Positions 20,636-53,703 of a DNA stretch of 64,000 nucleotides are shown here, piece after piece (position 1 is the stretch's first letter; each line of letters starts with the position of its first letter). Both the position numbers and the translations under genes were made by a program. Source of the stretch: Thecamonas trahens ATCC 50062 (Eukaryota; Protista; Apusomonadida); assembly GCF_000142905.1 (NCBI RefSeq), contig NW_013657679.1:374657-438656 (forward strand). The letters run 5' to 3'. The notes beneath the pieces were generated by a model. That model was not told the origin of the DNA. It did no database searches and saw only the letters and a program-made list of their open reading frames with translations.

Positions 20636-23600
20636 ATGAGCAATACCGGTGCAGATGATGAGGTACGACAGTGTGTGCGTGCGTGTGCGTGTGTGCAGTG
20701 TTTGCAGGGGGTGTGGTGTGTGGGCGACGGGAACAGGCACTGGTTTTTGCTACGGTTGAGGGCATGGAGAAGGGCCGGTAGCGAGTGGATGGCTCACTCA
20801 GTGGGATGGGAATGCGTGGAGGGTGCGTAGCCGGCGGGGCTGGAGGGCTACCTCCAGAAAAAGGGGGCCAAGGGCCTGCGCAAGACGTGGAAGAAGCGGT
20901 TCTTCCGGCTCGACTCGACGCGGCTGTACTACGGCAAGAGCCCAGAGGACGAGCCGATCTCGTTCATCTCGTTGGCGATGATGACTCAGGTGGAGCGGCA
21001 GCCCGGCAACGTGGCGCCGCCGTCCAAGAAGCTCAAGGACGCGCTGTTTGAGGTTGTTACCCGCGAGCGGCGGTACCAGCTGTGCGCGAGCTCGGCTGCC
21101 GAGTCTGCCGCTTGGGTGCAGGCCCTGAAGGCCATGCATCGATACCACTACGTGGAGCGCGACCGCGGGTTGTCGAACATGGACGAGATGCGGAGCGCAC
21201 TGGCTGCTGCGCAGCGCGACGACGAGGACGATTCAGACGACGAGGCTGGCGACATGGCCGAGGCGGAGCCGGTGCGACGGGCGACGGTCAAGGTCTCGGG
21301 CTACATCAAGATCAAGGTTCAAGCCGAAGGCGGGCCGGTCAAGACGGTGCTTCTCGCTGCCAACAAGAGCGTAGTTGAGCTGATAGCCAAGGCTGCAGCC
21401 AAGGTTGGATTTACGGGGTCGGACGCGGTGCTCCGTGTCTGCAGAAGCGGCGAGCTTGTGAGCAGCGGGCTTACTGTGGGCGAGGCGTGTGAAAACTATC
21501 GACTTGGGCCCAGAGATGGAGATGCTGTGCTTGTTGTTTGCGATAAGACTGGTACCCAGGTGAATGCCGAGGAAGATGAGGCTGTGCCAGCGAAGGCTGA
21601 GGAAGAGGCTGCTGCTGAGGCTGCCCGGGTGAAGGCCGAGGAAGAGGCTGCTGCTGAGGCTGCTCGAATCAAGGCCGAGGAAGAGGCTGCTGCTGAGGCT
21701 GCCCGGGTGAAGGTCGAGGAAGAGGCTGCTGCCGAGGCTGCTCGAATCAAGGCCGAGGAAGAGGCTGCTGCTGAGGCTGCCCGGGTCAAGGCCGAAGAGG
21801 AGGAGGCTGCCCGGGTCAAGGCCGAAGAAGAGGCTGCTGCCGAGGCTGCTCGAATCAAGGCCGAAGAGGAGGAGACTGCCCGGGTGAAGGCCGAAGAAGA
21901 GGAGGCTGCCCGGGTGAAGGCCGAAGAAGAGGAGGCTGCCCGGGTCAAGCCCAAGGAAGAGGCTGCTGCTGAGGCTGCTCGAATCAAGGCCGAAGAAGAG
22001 GAGGCTGCCCGGGTCAAGGCCAAGGAAGAGGCTGCTGCTGAGGCTGCTCGAATCAAGGCCGAAGAAGAGGAGGCTGCCCGGGTGAAGGCCGAAGAAGAGG
22101 AGGCTGCCCGGGTCAAGGCCGAAGAAGAGGCTGCTGCCGAGGCTGCTCGAATCAAGGCCGAAGAGGAGGAGACTGCCCGGGTGAAGGCCGAAGAGGAGGA
22201 GGCTGCCCGGGTCAAGGCCGAAGAAGAGGAGGCTGCCCGGGTGAAGGCGGAGGAAGAGGCTGCTGCTGAGGCTGCTCGAATCAAGGCCGAAGAAGAGGAG
22301 GCTGCCCGGGTGAAGGCCGAAGAGGAGGAGGCTGCCCGGGTGAAGGCTGAGGAAGAGGCTGCTGCCGAGGCTGCTCGAATCAAGGCCGAAGAGGAGGAGG
22401 CTGCCCGGGTGAAGGCCGAAGAGGAGGAGGCTGCCCGGGTCAAGGCCGAAGAAGAGGAGGCTGCCCGGGTGAAGGCGGAGGAAGAGGCTGCTGCTGAGGC
22501 TGCTCGAATCAAGGCCGAAGAAGAGGAGNNNNNNNNNNNNNNNNNNNNNNNNNNNNNNNNNNNNNNNNNNNNNNNNNNNNNNNNNNNNNNNNNNNNNNNN
22601 NNNNNNNNNNNNNNNNNNNNNNNNNNNNNNNNNNNNNNNNNNNNNNNNNNNNNNNNNNNNNNNNNNNNNNNNNNNNNNNNNNNNNNNNNNNNNNNNNNNN
22701 NNNNNNNNNNNNNNNNNNNNNNNNNNNNNNNNNNNNNNNNNNNNNNNNNNNNNNNNNNNNNNNNNNNNNNNNNNNNNNNNNNNNNNNNNNNNNNNNNNNN
22801 NNNNNNNNNNNNNNNNNNNNNNNNNNNNNNNNNNNNNNNNNNNNNNNNNNNNNNNNNNNNNNNNNNNNNNNNNNNNNNNNNNNNNNNNNNNNNNNNNNNN
22901 NNNNNNNNNNNNNNNNNNNNNNNNNNNNNNNNNNNNNNNNNNNNNNNNNNNNNNNNNNNNNNNNNNNNNNNNNNNNNNNNNNNNNNNNNNNNNNNNNNNN
23001 NNNNNNNNNNNNNNNNNNNNNNNNNNNNNNNNNNNNNNNNNNNNNNNNNNNNNNNNNNNNNNNNNNNNNNNNNNNNNNNNNNNNNNNNNNNNNNNNNNNN
23101 NNNNNNNNNNNNNNNNNNNNNNNNNNNNNNNNNNNNNNNNNNNNNNNNNNNNNNNNNNNNNNNNNNNNNNNNNNNNNNNNNNNNNNNNNNNNNNNNNNNN
23201 NNNNNNNNNNNNNNNNNNNNNNNNNNNNNNNNNNNNNNNNNNNNNNNNNNNNNNNNNNNNNNNNNNGGCTGAGGCTGCTCGAATCATGGCTGCTGCTGAG
23301 GCTGCTCGAATCAAGGCCGAAGAAGAGGAGGCTGCCCGGGTGAAGGCCGAAGAGGAGGAGGCTGCCCGGGTCAAGGCCGAAGAAGAGGAGGCTGCCCGGG
23401 TGAAGGCGGAGGAAGAGGCTGCTGCTGAGGCTGCTCGAATCAAGGCCGAAGAAGAGGAGGCTGCCCGGGTCAAGGCCAAGGAAGAGGCTGCTGCTGAGGC
23501 TGCTCGAATCAAGGCCGAAGAAGAGGAGGCTGCCCGGGTGAAGGCCGAAGAAGAGGAGGCTGCCCGGGTCAAGGCCGAAGAAGAGGCTGCTGCCGAGGCT

Positions 23601-26600
23601 GCTCGAATCAAGGCCGAAGAAGAGGAGGCTGCCCGGGTGAAGGCCGAAGAGGAGGAGGCTGCCCGGGTGAAGGCTGAGGAAGAGGCTGCTGCTGAGGCTG
23701 CTCGAATCAAGGCTGAGGAAGAGGAGGCTGCTCGAATCAAGGCTGAGGAAGAGGCTGCTGCCGAGGCTGCTCGAATCAAGGCCGAAGAGGAGGAGGCTGC
23801 CCGGGTGAAGGCCGAAGAAGAGGAGGCTGCCCGGGTGAAGGCTGAGGAAGAGAAGGCTGCCGAGGCTGCTCGAATCAAGGCTAAGGAAGAGGAGGCTGCC
23901 CGGGTCAAGGCTGAGGAAGAGAAGGCTGCTGAGGCCTCTCAAATCCACGCTGAAGAGGACACTGCTTGGACCGAGACTAAGAGCGAGACCACTCCTCTCA
24001 GCGCTGCTGATGAAGCCGCCGAGGCCAAGCACTCCACCCAGTCCACTTCCTCGTCCCAAACTCGCGCCAACTCCTTGATTCGCTCGCGCTCCACCCGGGT
24101 CGCTTCCATCGACAACACACGCGCAGCCGCTGAGGTTGCTGTCGCCCTGGTGGCGGGTGCTCCGACCGTCCCAAGCCGCAACCGATCGACAAAGTCGTCG
24201 GCTGCAAGCGCAGGCTCACCCGACGATGCCGCACTCGCCTCTGCCGCTGCCAAGGCCCGTGCTCGGCGCGCAGCTCGCACGGAGCGCGTCAACTCTACCT
24301 GGATCTCTTTTGATGCACCGAACACTACCGCCAATCCGGCCGACGATGCTCCGCCGGCTGAGCGTAGCGGCTGGCTCCACAAAAAGGGCGCAAAGCGCTG
24401 GCGCAGAAGCTACCGCAAGCGCTGGTTCCGCCTCCAAGAGAATCGCCTGTACTACTTCCACGAGCCGTCTGATCCGGACCACATCGCCTACATCTCCCTC
24501 GGCAATGTCCTGCACTTTCAGGCGTACTCAAACGCGGAGCCAAACAAGTTCAAGGGCTGCGGCTTTCAGATCGTAACCCGCGACAGAACCTACGAGCTCA
24601 TGGCTGAGAGTCCGGCCGACAAGGAAGAGTGGGTCCGCTGCCTCATCACCGCCAAAACCTACTACTACGACCTTCGCAGCCGCGTTGTTTCCGCTGTCCC
24701 AGAAGACTCGCTCCGCGCTGCGCTTGCCGATCTCGGTGACGAGTATTCGTCACACGACGATGACTGGGTCGACCTCGATGACTCAAGCTCGGGCTCGCTA
24801 CCAGATGCCCAGCACTTTACCAACGGCTCCGACGACGGCGTGGCAGATGGTTCGGACGCAGACGCCGAGTCGGCCGCTGAAGCCCCGCCGCTTCCGCTCT
24901 CCGGCTACCTACTCAAGCGTGGCGAGCAAACCTCATCGGTCGCCTCTGCCCTTACCAACCGTTTTGCCCTTCGTTGGAAGAAGCGCTACTTTGCGCTCCG
25001 CAACAATCGCCTCTACTACTACAAGGACGCCGACGACGAGCAGCCGACCTCGTCTATCGGCCTGGCCGAGGTAAGCGAGTTTCGCATCTCCAAGACCACG
25101 ACCTCCTCCAAGTACCGCGGCTGCGGCTTTGAGCTCGCAACTACCGCCAGAGTCTACGAACTCCTCGCCTCCTCGCCTGATGAGATGCGCATGTGGCTCG
25201 AGACCCTCGTCAAGACAAAAGCGTGGTACGCTGCCCAGCGTGAGTCTGCCGCCCCCGGCGAAGCCCCTTGGAGCGACGATGGCGAGGTGGAGAGTGGCGA
25301 GGCAGGCAGGGTCTCGTCCGACGACGACACTTCCCTCCCGCTCTCGTCTTCCGATGCCATCTCGCCATCGGTAGCTGCTGCTGCTGCTGCCGCTGCTGCG
25401 GCTGCCGCAACTGCGACTGCCGTGTCGGTGCCGGCCCGTCCTGCGCGTCGCAAGTGGGTCCTCACCCCGGAAATCTCCGCAGCCGCGGACCAGCTCGTCG
25501 CCCTCGTCCCGCCAGGCTCTGCAGAAGCCTCGGAACTGCCGCCAGTCACCCCTGACGGTGCCCACTCGACGAGCTCGTCGGCGCTTCCACTCCCACCACC
25601 GCCGCCATCGCCGCTGGAGGCTGCCGAGCTTCACCTCTGTCGCCTCCGGCGCGCTGCGACTCTGTCTGCCGCCGCCGGTCACGGCCGGCTCCGTTCCGAG
25701 CGCGGCTCTGACGTGCTTGACGACAGCTTCTGGCTCCCGATCCTGGGCGCACTCACCAGCGGCGGCCTTGACGTCTCGTCTCCCTCTTGCCTCCGCCTCA
25801 TCTCGCTCATCAACGCCCAGGCAATTGCTCTGCCAGCAGACGTCGACGCAAGCCTGCCTGGCGGCTGTGACGCGAGCCACGATCCCGACACCGCTGGCGG
25901 CCGATCGGCTGCCCCGAGCGTTGCTTCGCTCGCGCTTGGCGATTTTGCGCTGAGCTGGAACGTTGACGACGAGAGCTGGAACCTGACCCCAGAGACTTGG
26001 GCTGAGCTCCCGCCCTACACCCTCTCGATTCATTCGCTCGAAACCGTGGTCGCCTCGGGCGAGTCGCAGCTTGTTGTCATTGCCCCGCAGCTCGTCGCCT
26101 TGTTTGATCCCGACCTCGCCGACTGGAGCCTTTTCTCGCTCCCGGCTTCCACCCATCTTGCACCTGGCGACGCTCTCGCTGCTGGGGTAAGCGTCGACTC
26201 GGCTCGCATCTTTGACACACTGTTCCCCTCTGAGTCGGACGCTGCTTGGCGGCGATGGCTGTCAGACGACGCGAGTGGCGAGCAGCACCCTTTGCGGGCG
26301 AGCCCACTCGAGCCCGCCACTCCGCCGCGAGTGGCTGCGCTTGCCTCCACCGGCTCACCTGCCACCGCGCCTTTTACACCCAGCTCGCCGTCAGGGCTCG
26401 AGCCCAAGGACGAACTGCTCGCCAAGGTCTCGACGGCCGTCTCGGGACTCATTGCGCACTTTGCTGACGCCGATGTCGTCGGCCAGCCCGACGCCGCGCT
26501 CGAGGCCGGCGACGATAGCATCAACCGCAAGATTGTCTCGCTGGTCCGCGGCGAGCTGTGCGCCGCGCTCGCATACGTCTTTGCGCACGAGTTCAAGTTC

Positions 26601-50033: not shown

Positions 50034-51077
50034 ATGGCAGCATCCCTCCGCAGGCTTGTGTCGCAGAAGAAGGTCCGGTACCAGGAAGATGGGTTCGACC
50101 TCGACCTGACGTATGTGACCCCACGGGTCATTGCCATGGGCTTCCCGGCTTCTGGCGTAGAGGCCGTCTACCGCAACCCGATGAAGGAGGTCAAGAGATT
50201 GCTGGAGGCCAAGCATGGCGCGGCGTACAAGGTGTACAACCTGTGCGCCGAGTCGAAGCACCAGTACGCACCAGATGCCTTTGCGCCTGCCCAGCAGACC
50301 GATGACTACGAGTTTGAGGACCACAACGCCCTCCCGCTGCCGATCCTCGCCGACCTCGCCACCGACGTTGCCGCCTTTCTTGCCGCCGACGACGCCAACG
50401 TTGTCGCCATCCACTGCAAGGCCGGCAAGGGCCGGACTGGCCTCGTTGTCGCCTCTCTCCTCCTGCATCTTGGCGAGGTCGCATCGGCCGATGCAGCGCT
50501 CGAGCACTTTGCCTCGGTCCGCACCTCGGACGGCAAGGGTGTTTCGGTCCCGTCGCAGAAGCGGTACGTCCAGTATTACGCCAGCCTCCTCGATGCCGGG
50601 CTCCGCGACGCCGCTGCCGCCGCCCTCGACCTTCCGTCCGCCCAACGGGCCGCTGCCCTCGACGCCGCCATCCCACGCGCCACCATCGTCCTCGACGCCG
50701 TCACCATGCACACGGTGCCCAAGTTTGACGTCCGCGGCGGCTGCGATCCCTACGTCGTCGTGGACACCTTTCACGACGGCGAGCTCGTCCGGACCGACAC
50801 CGCTCCGCATGTCAAGAACGAGGACTCGGTCACCATCGACTTGCCCGGCGGCGTCACAGTCGGCGCCGACTTTCGGGTCACTCTGTACGACGCCGACGTG
50901 GGCGGCGGCGACGATCTCATGTGCTACTTTTGGCTCAACCCGGCGCAGCTGCTTGCCGACGCGCCGGCCGGCGAGTATGTCCTACCCCACGACGCCATCG
51001 ACGGTGTCCACAAGGACAAGAAGAAGAAGCACTTTGACCCGTCGTTTGCGCTCGCCATCACCTTTCATGCTGTGTAA
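50034..51077 (+). CDS. PTEN: PTEN phosphoinositide 3-phosphatase (PTP + C2)
   Basis: LRRLVSQKKVRYQEDGFDLDLTYV, IAMGFP, YRNP, VYNLCAE, FEDHN, AIHCKAGKGRTG, PSQKRYVQYY, C2 domain; no C-terminal tail. Confidence 0.95.
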   Translation: MAASLRRLVSQKKVRYQEDGFDLDLTYVTPRVIAMGFPASGVEAVYRNPMKEVKRLLEAKHGAAYKVYNLCAESKHQYAPDAFAPAQQTDDYEFEDHNALPLPILADLATDVAAFLAADDANVVAIHCKAGKGRTGLVVASLLLHLGEVASADAALEHFASVRTSDGKGVSVPSQKRYVQYYASLLDAGLRDAAAAALDLPSAQRAAALDAAIPRATIVLDAVTMHTVPKFDVRGGCDPYVVVDTFHDGELVRTDTAPHVKNEDSVTIDLPGGVTVGADFRVTLYDADVGGGDDLMCYFWLNPAQLLADAPAGEYVLPHDAIDGVHKDKKKKHFDPSFALAITFHAV

Positions 51078-51085
51078 ACGCGTAT

Positions 51086-51808
51086 TCACTTGTCCGGAAA
51101 GTGGCCAAAGGTGCGGTACCGCCCGCCGGTGCCCGGGCCCGACGAGAGCGGAAGGAGCGACGCGCCCGAGTACATGCTCGCCTCGGCGCCGGAGCGGTAG
51201 AGGGCGATCGAGGCGGCGATCGAGAGGAACGGAAGCGCGGCGGCGAGCCAGGCGGCCCACGCAAGGTCGGCAACCTTGGAGGCAACCACCTCGTTGTTGG
51301 TCACCCGGCCGCCGACAAACCACACAGTGACCGCCGCCACGTTGAGCGCCGCTGCCAGCCCGCCAACAAGCGCGCCGCGCTGGGCGGCAAAGCCGGAGGC
51401 TGTCGGCTGATCGAGCGCCTGCTGCGAGGCACAGAACATAGCAGCAGCAAGCTGGCCGGCGTAGCCGACCACGGCAAAGACCAGCGCAATGAGCGCCGCC
51501 AGCGAGCAGTACCACAGCTGCTCCATGCCGTCCACAATCTTGGCCGTCGTTGCCTTGGCAGCTTCGTCGCTGATCTTGTGCGCGTAGCGGTAAAAGCCGA
51601 GCGTCTCTGCCAGCGAGACGCACACGTCCATGTTGTAGTCAAGAAGCCCGTCCGGATCCACGGGGCTGTTGGCCGTGTGGGTACACATGGCCAGCAGTCC
51701 CACGTCCTCTCCAGAGGCAGAGTACCAGTGGTTGGAGGCCAGCGCAACCGCGAGGCCCAGCACCACCAGCAGGGTGGTTACCGCTGCAGCCACAGGCACA
51801 CCGGACAT
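51086..51808 (-). CDS. Claudin/PMP22/EMP-clan-like tetraspan membrane protein (240 aa)
   Basis: TM1 then SNHW..GLL..C...C extracellular signature; three more hydrophobic segments; LAWAAWLA at the start of TM4. Confidence 0.65.
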   Translation of the reverse strand: MSGVPVAAAVTTLLVVLGLAVALASNHWYSASGEDVGLLAMCTHTANSPVDPDGLLDYNMDVCVSLAETLGFYRYAHKISDEAAKATTAKIVDGMEQLWYCSLAALIALVFAVVGYAGQLAAAMFCASQQALDQPTASGFAAQRGALVGGLAAALNVAAVTVWFVGGRVTNNEVVASKVADLAWAAWLAAALPFLSIAASIALYRSGAEASMYSGASLLPLSSGPGTGGRYRTFGHFPDK

Positions 51809-52005
51809 GACCAGAGTGAGCAAGCGGGCGTGTGCGTGTGTTGGGTGCGTGTGCTTGTGTGTGTGCGTGTGTGTGTGGTAGAGACTGGTGTGTGTGGCGG
51901 TGGCGGCGTGCCGTGGCTGCTCTCCTGCACAGAGTGTCATGCGCTGGCTTTTTCGTGGCACGTGTGCGCGTTTTTGGCGGGCAGGCTACGCGGCGCGGAA
52001 GCAGA

Positions 52006-53703
52006 CTACGATGGCCTGGCCGCGGCGTCGCCGGCCGCCACGCCTGTGATGTGGCTTCCACCTCGATGGATGGCGGCGTCGACGTCGGCGTCGTTGCCGG
52101 CAGCGAAGGCGGCGAGCTTGGCGTCGAGGACACGGAGAAAGACGGCCTCGTCGTCGGAGAACTCGGACGATGTGGCAGACGCGCGGGCTCGCATGGTCTC
52201 CGCCATGTGCTCGAGGCCGGTGACAAAGCTCTCACGGAAGGTCGCCGCCAGGCCTGCAAGAACCAGGCGGTGCTGCGAGAGCGCACCGAGCGAGGCAAGC
52301 AGGGCCGGATCGCCGAGCGAGCGCATGTCGGCCGCCACGGTCGAGAGTGAGGCCACCGCGTCCTGCAGAACCGCGAGGTGCGAGGGGAGGCCACCGAGGC
52401 CGAGTCCCTCGGGCAGGGCGCTGTAGGGGTTACCAGCCGGGGCATTCGGCTTGTTCCCACCGAGCAGGCCGGAGACTGCGCCGTAGAGCATCGAGGCCGC
52501 GTCGGTCGAGCTCGGCTCGGCGACACCGGTCGCGGGATACATGCCTGATGCCTGGCCGGCAATCGAGAGGAGCGGGAACGGCGTGCCAGATGAGGGGCTC
52601 AAGCCGGCGGCGGCGGTAGTTGCGCTTCCTGACGCAGGCATCTCGTCCTGAAACGATGGGACGAGCGCCTCCCACTCGCGGTTGCGGCCGTAGCGCTTGA
52701 GGGTGCGGTAGGTGGTGAAGAGGAGGAAGAACATGCCGAGCTGAGCCAGAGCAGCGAGGCCGGCCATAAACGCGATCCAGTTGGTCACCACCGATGCACA
52801 GGTGTAGACCAGGTTGGGAAACTCGGAGTTGAGACCCGAGAACCGGGCCGAGTGGCACGAGAACGAGTTGAGCTCGCCCTGGACCGAGAACACCGTGATC
52901 TGGAGGGCGGCCATGACAAAGATGACGGCGTAGACAATGATGGCGACGACCTTGAACCGACGGAACCGGTCGATGACGTCCTGGATGTCGTTTTCCATGC
53001 TAAGCGCAATCTCGTGCGGCGTCTCGAGCGGCGCCCACGGCGTGTCGTCAATGAGGGTGGCGTACGGGTCCGAGGCGTCAGATGCCGAGCGCGAGCGCGG
53101 AGTCGCTTGCGGCGAGAGCGGGCGGTCAGTGGCGAGAGCGGGCTGCGGGGCGGCGGCCGCGCCTGGTCGGGCTGGCATCGTTGCCGAGCGCGCCGCAAAG
53201 GTGCCCGAGAGCGGCCTGCCGGCCTGCGATGAGGTGCGTGCTCTCAGCGAGCCGCCGTACGGCGGGCCGCGGACCGAGCCGTAGACCGAGCCAGCCATGG
53301 GAGTTTGCGGGGTGTTTGCCAAGGCGATCTGGTACTCATCGTGCTTGATGCGCTTGCGAATGGCGGCCGTGAGGTCAGAGAGGTACGACGACGAGCGCGA
53401 GTAGACAAAGAGCGCGTAGACAATGAACAGCAGGGTGGTGGCGAGGGTGTAGTAGAGCTGCTTGAACTGCGACGCGCACTTTAGCTGAACAAAGTCGATC
53501 TCCGGCAGCTCTGCCAGAGTCACGTTGTGCTTGGCTGTGTTGGGCGGAGTGCACTTGACGTGGTTGGAGAGGAGAGTGATGACCACTGCCACCTCGAGCA
53601 GTGCAATGATCATGATGGTGTTGCGCAGCGAGTCCTCGGTGTACCGGCCCTTTGTCGGCCGCCGCAGCGCCGCCACAAACGACGAGAGGCCTTCTGCCGA
53701 CAT
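52006..53703 (-). CDS. Pannexin/innexin/LRRC8-like 4-TM protein (565 aa)
   Basis: Four TM segments; the only four Cys (51, 76, 283, 302) lie two per predicted extracellular loop; long cytoplasmic TM2-TM3 loop; NVT sequon in loop 1. Confidence 0.6.
   Translation of the reverse strand: MSAEGLSSFVAALRRPTKGRYTEDSLRNTIMIIALLEVAVVITLLSNHVKCTPPNTAKHNVTLAELPEIDFVQLKCASQFKQLYYTLATTLLFIVYALFVYSRSSSYLSDLTAAIRKRIKHDEYQIALANTPQTPMAGSVYGSVRGPPYGGSLRARTSSQAGRPLSGTFAARSATMPARPGAAAAPQPALATDRPLSPQATPRSRSASDASDPYATLIDDTPWAPLETPHEIALSMENDIQDVIDRFRRFKVVAIIVYAVIFVMAALQITVFSVQGELNSFSCHSARFSGLNSEFPNLVYTCASVVTNWIAFMAGLAALAQLGMFFLLFTTYRTLKRYGRNREWEALVPSFQDEMPASGSATTAAAGLSPSSGTPFPLLSIAGQASGMYPATGVAEPSSTDAASMLYGAVSGLLGGNKPNAPAGNPYSALPEGLGLGGLPSHLAVLQDAVASLSTVAADMRSLGDPALLASLGALSQHRLVLAGLAATFRESFVTGLEHMAETMRARASATSSEFSDDEAVFLRVLDAKLAAFAAGNDADVDAAIHRGGSHITGVAAGDAAARPS

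Follow-up and report, generated by a model that had tools for sequence, protein, structure and literature searches.

We describe here a single gene from a stretch of 64,000 nucleotides of the genome of Thecamonas trahens ATCC 50062 (contig NW_013657679.1, positions 374,657 to 438,656), which is referred to as the window in the following. The gene occupies positions 52006-53703 on the minus strand. As judged from its sequences it belongs to a conserved, lineage-restricted orphan family of predicted tetraspan membrane proteins, and all members that were found come from this genome and a single marine relative. An original prediction, made from the DNA sequence alone, had regarded the product as a candidate large-pore channel subunit of the pannexin/innexin/LRRC8 type. 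A pannexin-like channel architecture and mechanism appears plausible to us, if only tentatively so.

Translation of this interval reveals an uninterrupted, intron-less open reading frame (ORF) of 565 amino acids (aa) plus stop, and a public protein collection holds a 565-aa prediction that is 100% identical to the window protein. The gene is real. The host genome has a size of 28.7 Mb and a GC content of 65%, and the genes of the window appear as single long ORFs. An alternative, GTG-started ORF extends to 53871. The start was placed at 53703, because the ortholog described below aligns from its own Met of the equivalent motif, matching that position, and because the part added by the GTG-started ORF is a translated GT/CA-repeat spacer. 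The GC content at third codon positions (GC3) is 0.83 for the ORF and 0.78-0.88 in each of its sub-regions, a disordered insert included (0.82). These values are in line with both flanking genes, NOG1 (0.88) and a gene for a PTEN-like phosphatase (0.82). The features of the gene and its product are the following (TM, transmembrane segment; AF2, AlphaFold2; pLDDT, predicted local distance difference test):

52006..53703, minus strand: complete coding sequence, 565 aa plus stop; GC3 0.83, identical public prediction
53662..53697, minus strand: predicted amphipathic N-terminal helix, aa 3-14, conserved; AF2 helix 3-14, paralog helix 2-11
53566..53622, minus strand: predicted TM1, aa 28-46, with the acidic residue E37 in mid-helix; hydrophobicity
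53458..53565, minus strand: predicted outer loop 1, aa 47-82, with C51, an NVT sequon and C76; script, alignment and AF2
53401..53457, minus strand: predicted TM2, aa 83-101, with T90 invariant and proline absent from all members; hydrophobicity and alignment
53023..53310, minus strand: predicted disordered cytoplasmic insert rich in Ser/Thr/Pro/Arg, aa 132-227; pLDDT <50, alignment gaps, GC3 0.82
52954..53019, minus strand: predicted cytoplasmic helix leading into TM3, aa 229-250, with the invariant R246, F247 and K251; AF2 and alignment
52888..52953, minus strand: predicted TM3, aa 251-272; hydrophobicity and AF2
52792..52887, minus strand: predicted outer loop 2, aa 273-304, with C283 and C302; script and alignment
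52720..52791, minus strand: predicted TM4, aa 305-328; hydrophobicity and AF2
52672..52719, minus strand: post-TM4 motif, aa 329-344, with the invariant R333, L335, Y338 and W344; alignment
52009..52671, minus strand: predicted cytoplasmic tail, aa 345-565; no Pfam domain, no leucine-rich repeats (LRRs)

The layout given by the original prediction was largely recovered. Kyte-Doolittle analysis yields the four hydrophobic segments that had been claimed (at about aa 28-46, 83-101, 251-272 and 305-328), and the peptides quoted for them are all present in the protein. Exactly four cysteines were counted by script, at the positions reported before: C51 and C76 in loop 1, C283 and C302 in loop 2. 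C51 stands in a C-T-P-P sequence and C76 in a [FY]-V-x-[LI]-x-C motif on a predicted helix, while C283 and C302 are 19 residues apart and C302 belongs to a C-A motif immediately ahead of TM4. The NVT sequence noted in loop 1 (aa 60-62) is the sole N-x-S/T sequon of the protein and falls into the variable insert of that loop. The conserved N-terminal helix, with a hydrophobic moment of 0.33-0.47, is followed by the invariant P16 and then by a R-Y-[ST]-E-D-x-L motif ahead of TM1. A four-TM topology with cytoplasmic N- and C-termini, as it had been assumed, is predicted from the distribution of lysine plus arginine (5 in the N-terminus, 17 in the TM2-TM3 loop and 5 after TM4 versus 4 in loop 1 and 1 in loop 2) and from the loop-1 sequon that is found in every member of the family. 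The loop between TM2 and TM3, described as long, disordered and helical at its end, also appears as such in the AF2 model, where aa 132-227 form a coil with pLDDT <50 and a helix starts at 229 and continues into TM3. The tail consists of a Gly/Ala/Ser-rich part followed by a segment (about aa 440-540) that is conserved with the ortholog. Neither the tail (aa 351-565) nor the whole protein matches any Pfam family, hence there are no LRRs, in agreement with the earlier description.

Relatives were searched with the window protein, a three-sequence alignment and the core of the C8 paralog (see below) as queries, with phmmer being used on 1.84 billion representative proteins. In these and in 5.8 billion clustered proteins the only relative is one ortholog of 571 aa from a 3.5-kb TARA Oceans metagenome scaffold, which shares 37% identity with the window protein across 98% of the query. 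Two metagenome scans added to this ortholog only a fragment of 88 aa, which comes from a second data set and is identical to the C-terminus of the ortholog. A six-frame search of the Thecamonas genome itself led to two distant paralogs with 21-29% identity, named here after their contigs:

contig C8, L003:1048-2451, plus strand: C8 paralog, 467 aa
contig C45, L010:388-2322, minus strand: C45 paralog, 644 aa

A further candidate paralog on C35 was rejected as a chance match (E 0.69 across 39 positions). The comparison of the sub-alignments query plus ortholog and C8 plus C45 by hhalign gave a probability of 97.3% and an E-value of 2e-11 over aa 5-119, and reciprocal matches across TM3-TM4 further support the homology of the two pairs.

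The core alignment comprises the query, the ortholog, C8 and C45, with identities to the query of 21-47%. The four cysteines are invariant in all four members. Other invariant residues are L6, V10, P16, Y21, E23 and L26 in the N-terminus, V72, T90, and those flanking TM3 (R246, F247 and K251 before it) and TM4 (R333, L335, Y338 and W344 after it), which form the family motifs RF..K and R.L..Y.....W. A single N-x-S/T sequon occurs in every member and lies in the variable part of loop 1, the middle of TM1 is occupied by an acidic residue throughout (E/E/D/E), and the two cysteines of loop 2 are 19, 19, 19 and 20 residues apart. The four-cysteine pattern is not due to chance, because the cysteines, the loop-1 sequon and several motifs are kept in an ortholog with 37% identity and in paralogs with 21-29%. 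Neither paralog has the insert of aa 132-227, and the ortholog has a shorter one. C8 has a longer loop 1 with a third cysteine and an NTT sequon, and both paralogs carry basic residues in TM4 which the window protein does not have.

These findings also bear on the question if the reading frame might be a non-functional chance ORF or pseudogene in GC-rich DNA. Long spurious ORFs are numerous in high-GC genomes, and several of them overlap the locus 52006-53703. The in-frame GC3 resembles that of the neighbouring genes across all sub-regions, however, a full-length ortholog keeps the motifs, and two paralogs retain the same invariant residues, so that a non-functional frame of either kind can practically be dismissed.

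AF2 models of the monomer cores were built from the four-sequence alignment. The models predict a helix at the N-terminus, and a TM2, TM3 and TM4 that reach far into the cytoplasm. The model of the window protein is weak (mean pLDDT 56, predicted template modelling score (pTM) 0.50), with a helix spanning 3-14 at the N-terminus, four long helices at pLDDT 70-85, and loops below 50 which contain no strands. The core of the C8 paralog (275 residues) gave a better model (pLDDT 67.5, pTM 0.60). Its only ectodomain strands, 51-53 and 226-228, lie at Cys52, the first cysteine of loop 1, and at Cys227, the last one of loop 2, where pLDDT is about 49-53. When the C8 model was compared to the PDB with Foldseek, the best 50 matches were all LRRC8 or pannexin chains (E 8.7e-3 to 0.1, probability 0.75-1.0, 240-309 columns, TM-score up to 0.53). 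Only background was obtained against BFVD (best E 0.36, probability 0.63 or lower). VIA aligned 170-223 residues of the C8 model, N-terminus included, to connexin (Z up to 12.6), LRRC8 (12.2) and PANX1 (11.8), and in a comparison with protomers of these three 185-223 residues were aligned at Z 11.4-12.6. The tool itself warns that for helical bundles a Z of less than about 13 carries no information. The fold evidence thus comes from a paralog and not from the window protein, and it is suggestive rather than decisive. The same holds for the structural kinship expected by the original prediction, for which the Foldseek result with the C8 model speaks weakly and the window model, matching generic helical bundles, does not.

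A protomer of a large-pore channel has four TMs with TM1 nearest to the pore, an N-terminal helix or coil, and an ectodomain made up of a loop-1 strand with a pore-facing helix, a loop-2 hairpin and inter-loop disulfides (PMC7108861, PMC6086657). The family resembles pannexins 1 and 2 and the innexins in the predicted N-in four-TM layout and in two conserved cysteines per outer loop, the first of them a few residues past TM1 and the last directly ahead of TM4. A short helix before TM1, a loop-1 helix before TM2 and cytoplasmic helices after TM2 and TM4 are further predicted similarities. In PANX1 the loops are held by two inter-loop disulfides and form a small beta-sheet (PMC7108861). Frog PANX1 has its loop-2 residues Cys248 and Cys267 at a spacing of 19, compared to 19-20 in the family, and Cys66 is paired with Cys267 (PMC7108861). 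The two strands of the C8 model would correspond to this connectivity, at low confidence in that region. Pannexin chains are among the top Foldseek matches of the C8 model, and VIA aligned them over 209-215 residues (Z 11.6-11.8). On the other hand, the profiles are silent, the proline that is conserved in TM2 of innexins (PMC9949713) is absent, and loop 1 of the window protein is shorter, while the family has an acidic residue in TM1, a long unrelated C-tail, and an occurrence outside Metazoa.

LRRC8 (SWELL1) chains are the best Foldseek matches of the C8 model (E 8.7e-3, probability 0.99-1.0, TM-score up to 0.53). VIA aligned 208-223 residues with TM1 starting at 20 in the model and 21 in the chain, and LRRC8 also has a variable loop-1 insert between the first cysteine and the loop helix. 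In contrast to LRRC8, the window protein neither matches PF12534 nor contains LRRs, and it has four loop cysteines instead of the six which form three disulfides in LRRC8A (PMC6086657). To regard two cysteines per loop as a hallmark of pannexins, innexins and LRRC8 was therefore too strong. Synaptophysin and CALHM have two cysteines in each loop as well, so that the pattern amounts to a likeness only. Connexins have a four-helix protomer with an N-terminal helix like the family, and they reach the highest VIA Z among the membrane channels for the C8 model (12.1-12.6, over 170-189 of about 190-206 residues). However, they are not matched in Pfam, are absent from the best 50 Foldseek matches, and have three cysteines per loop instead of two. 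Some short motifs, namely C-x-P and R-x-L-x-x-Y following TM1 and TM4, respectively, and V-D-x-x-C and R-C-A ahead of TM2 and TM4, respectively, presumably resemble LRRC8A and PANX1, and we take them as leads only.

In the channel reading the gene would encode one of three paralogous, N-in, four-pass and N-glycosylated membrane subunits. By analogy, the outer loops would be stapled together by two disulfides, C51-C302 and C76-C283, and the subunits would assemble as a ring around a pore, as connexins, innexins, pannexins and LRRC8 do. TM1 with its conserved acidic residue E37 and the amphipathic N-terminal helix may face this pore, and the loop-1 helix may shape its outer mouth. The disordered TM2-TM3 insert, which is rich in Ser/Thr/Arg, and the long C-tail would then be cytoplasmic regulatory parts.

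A number of results weigh against this reading. The window protein, its ortholog and both paralogs gave nothing meaningful in hmmscan against Pfam at E up to 1-10, and no match to Innexin (PF00876), Pannexin_like (PF12534) or Connexin (PF00029). In the six-frame translation of the whole genome the Innexin hidden Markov model (HMM) yielded 0 matches at E up to 10, in a search made without a positive control, and Pannexin_like yielded 0 matches at the same threshold. PDB chain sequences compared to the family profile, to both half-profiles and to both paralogs gave chance matches only (E 0.15 or worse), and the language-model search of the ESM Atlas with the window protein stayed at chance level, the best named cluster (0.76) being arterivirus GP5. 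A TM2 proline was looked for in the four members and found in none. At the level of sequences and profiles there is, accordingly, no evidence at all for kinship with pannexins/innexins, LRRC8 or connexins. The structural data are also mixed. With the window model all Foldseek matches were to designed bundles or to soluble helical proteins, at E-values of about 1 or worse, and VIA ranked a designed maquette (Z 14.5), synaptophysin (13.2, 179 residues aligned) and sarcospan (12.8) first, above connexin-32 (10.8), LRRC8A (10.8, root mean square deviation (RMSD) 7.7) and pannexin-2 (10.4, RMSD 7.1). The Z-scores for connexin, pannexin and LRRC8 (10-12.6 over both models) lie in the uninformative range and are no better than those for sarcospan (12.6-12.8), synaptophysin (10.2-13.2) or designed bundles. 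The Foldseek E-values for the C8 model exceed 0.001, RMSDs are 7-15 A, the loop models have pLDDT below 50-55 and are built on no more than four sequences, and the window protein has a short loop 1 of 36 aa. Of the proposed pre-metazoan large-pore channel, the topology, the two invariant cysteines per loop, the N-terminal helix and the Foldseek result with the C8 model thus speak for the proposal, and the profiles, the TM2 proline and the LRRs do not. We therefore assign the window protein neither to the pannexin/innexin nor to the LRRC8 family; such a membership is unproven.

Two other interpretations of the protein have to be considered. It could act as an organiser that conducts nothing, like the tetraspans of the MARVEL/synaptophysin or tetraspanin/sarcospan kind. 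No pore would then be formed, the loop disulfides would stabilise small ectodomains, and the long cytoplasmic loop and tail would recruit partners. These tetraspans are four-TM, N-in bundles with loop disulfides as well, synaptophysin shares the two cysteines in each loop, and the loops of the window protein are short. The VIA ranking of the window model would fit such a protein, and sarcospan is also the top membrane-protein match of the C8 model (12.6, with designed bundles at 15.6). However, no MARVEL (PF01284), tetraspanin or claudin match was obtained in Pfam even at E up to 10, the Z-scores for these proteins fall into the same non-discriminating range, and Foldseek on the better C8 model exclusively favours LRRC8 and pannexin, without MARVEL- or sarcospan-type chains among its top matches. 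Moreover, the TM1 acid and the amphipathic N-terminal helix, which are conserved throughout the family, are not found in such tetraspans and would be unexpected in a scaffold. We regard an organiser as possible but somewhat unlikely. Alternatively, the likeness to pannexins might be convergent and superficial, and the protein a lineage-specific subunit of a channel, transporter or receptor unrelated to known tetraspans, for example an auxiliary subunit that docks to its partner via the buried acidic residue of TM1. The orphan status in the protein collections and metagenome scans and the generic structural matches would agree with that, and in both paralogs, though not in the window protein, basic residues in TM4 suggest that charges might be paired within the membrane. 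It would leave unexplained, however, why Foldseek prefers LRRC8 and pannexin for the C8 model and why the N-terminal helix, the placement of the cysteines and the loop-2 spacing coincide with PANX1, and we consider it unlikely.

Directly downstream of the gene, on the same strand (51086-51811), lies a gene for another four-TM protein of 241 aa, which has no Pfam match (best SHR3, E 0.34). Its first loop shows a W...C...C pattern which is merely claudin- or PMP22-like in look, and the protein has no sequence relation to the four-cysteine family. The convergent gene at 50034-51077 on the plus strand encodes the PTEN-like phosphatase, in which Pfam finds a PTEN C2 domain (E 1.2e-16), and its end is only 9 nt away from the stop codon (51086) of the tetraspan gene, which indicates very tight packing. 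No synteny is conserved between the window locus and that of the ortholog. In the marine relative a convergent cyclophilin gene (L001:3317-3523 and L018:292-912, both minus strand) lies about 22 nt past the ortholog stop. This arrangement was seen in two independent data sets, and the neighbours in the window, NOG1 and the tetraspan gene, differ from it. The stretch is contained in marine and estuary metagenomes and in 2010-2011 runs. Elsewhere in the window, long tandem arrays with units of 30, 39, 69 and 99 nt were found at 21593-22528 and 23288-23956 inside large plus-strand ORFs. They encode charged repeats of the EAAR[VI]KAEEE type (ER/K-like rod), and the 2-kb bins around them have an unusually low GC content (0.40-0.49) with strong GC and AT skew.

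Channels of the pannexin/innexin, connexin and LRRC8 types count as inventions of animals that are linked to multicellular signalling. In previous surveys with BLAST and HMMER no connexin or innexin/pannexin homologues were found outside Metazoa (PMC6391747). That the three paralogs and the marine ortholog are true, highly diverged homologues of this superfamily is in our view unlikely, but if they were, this published absence would be overturned, and the fold together with the inter-loop disulfide staple would predate animals, being at least as old as the ancestor that apusomonads and opisthokonts share. If the proteins are scaffold-type tetraspans instead, they still represent a new family of orphans that is clearly marked by its motifs. 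As channels, they would likely allow this marine flagellate, which has no cell wall, to release ions, osmolytes or nucleotides in a regulated way. If a unicellular organism from a close outgroup of the opisthokonts has a conserved, multi-copy family with the predicted topology, the N-terminal helix and the cysteine staple pattern of these channels, this would point either to a pre-animal origin of this architecture or to a clean case of convergence.

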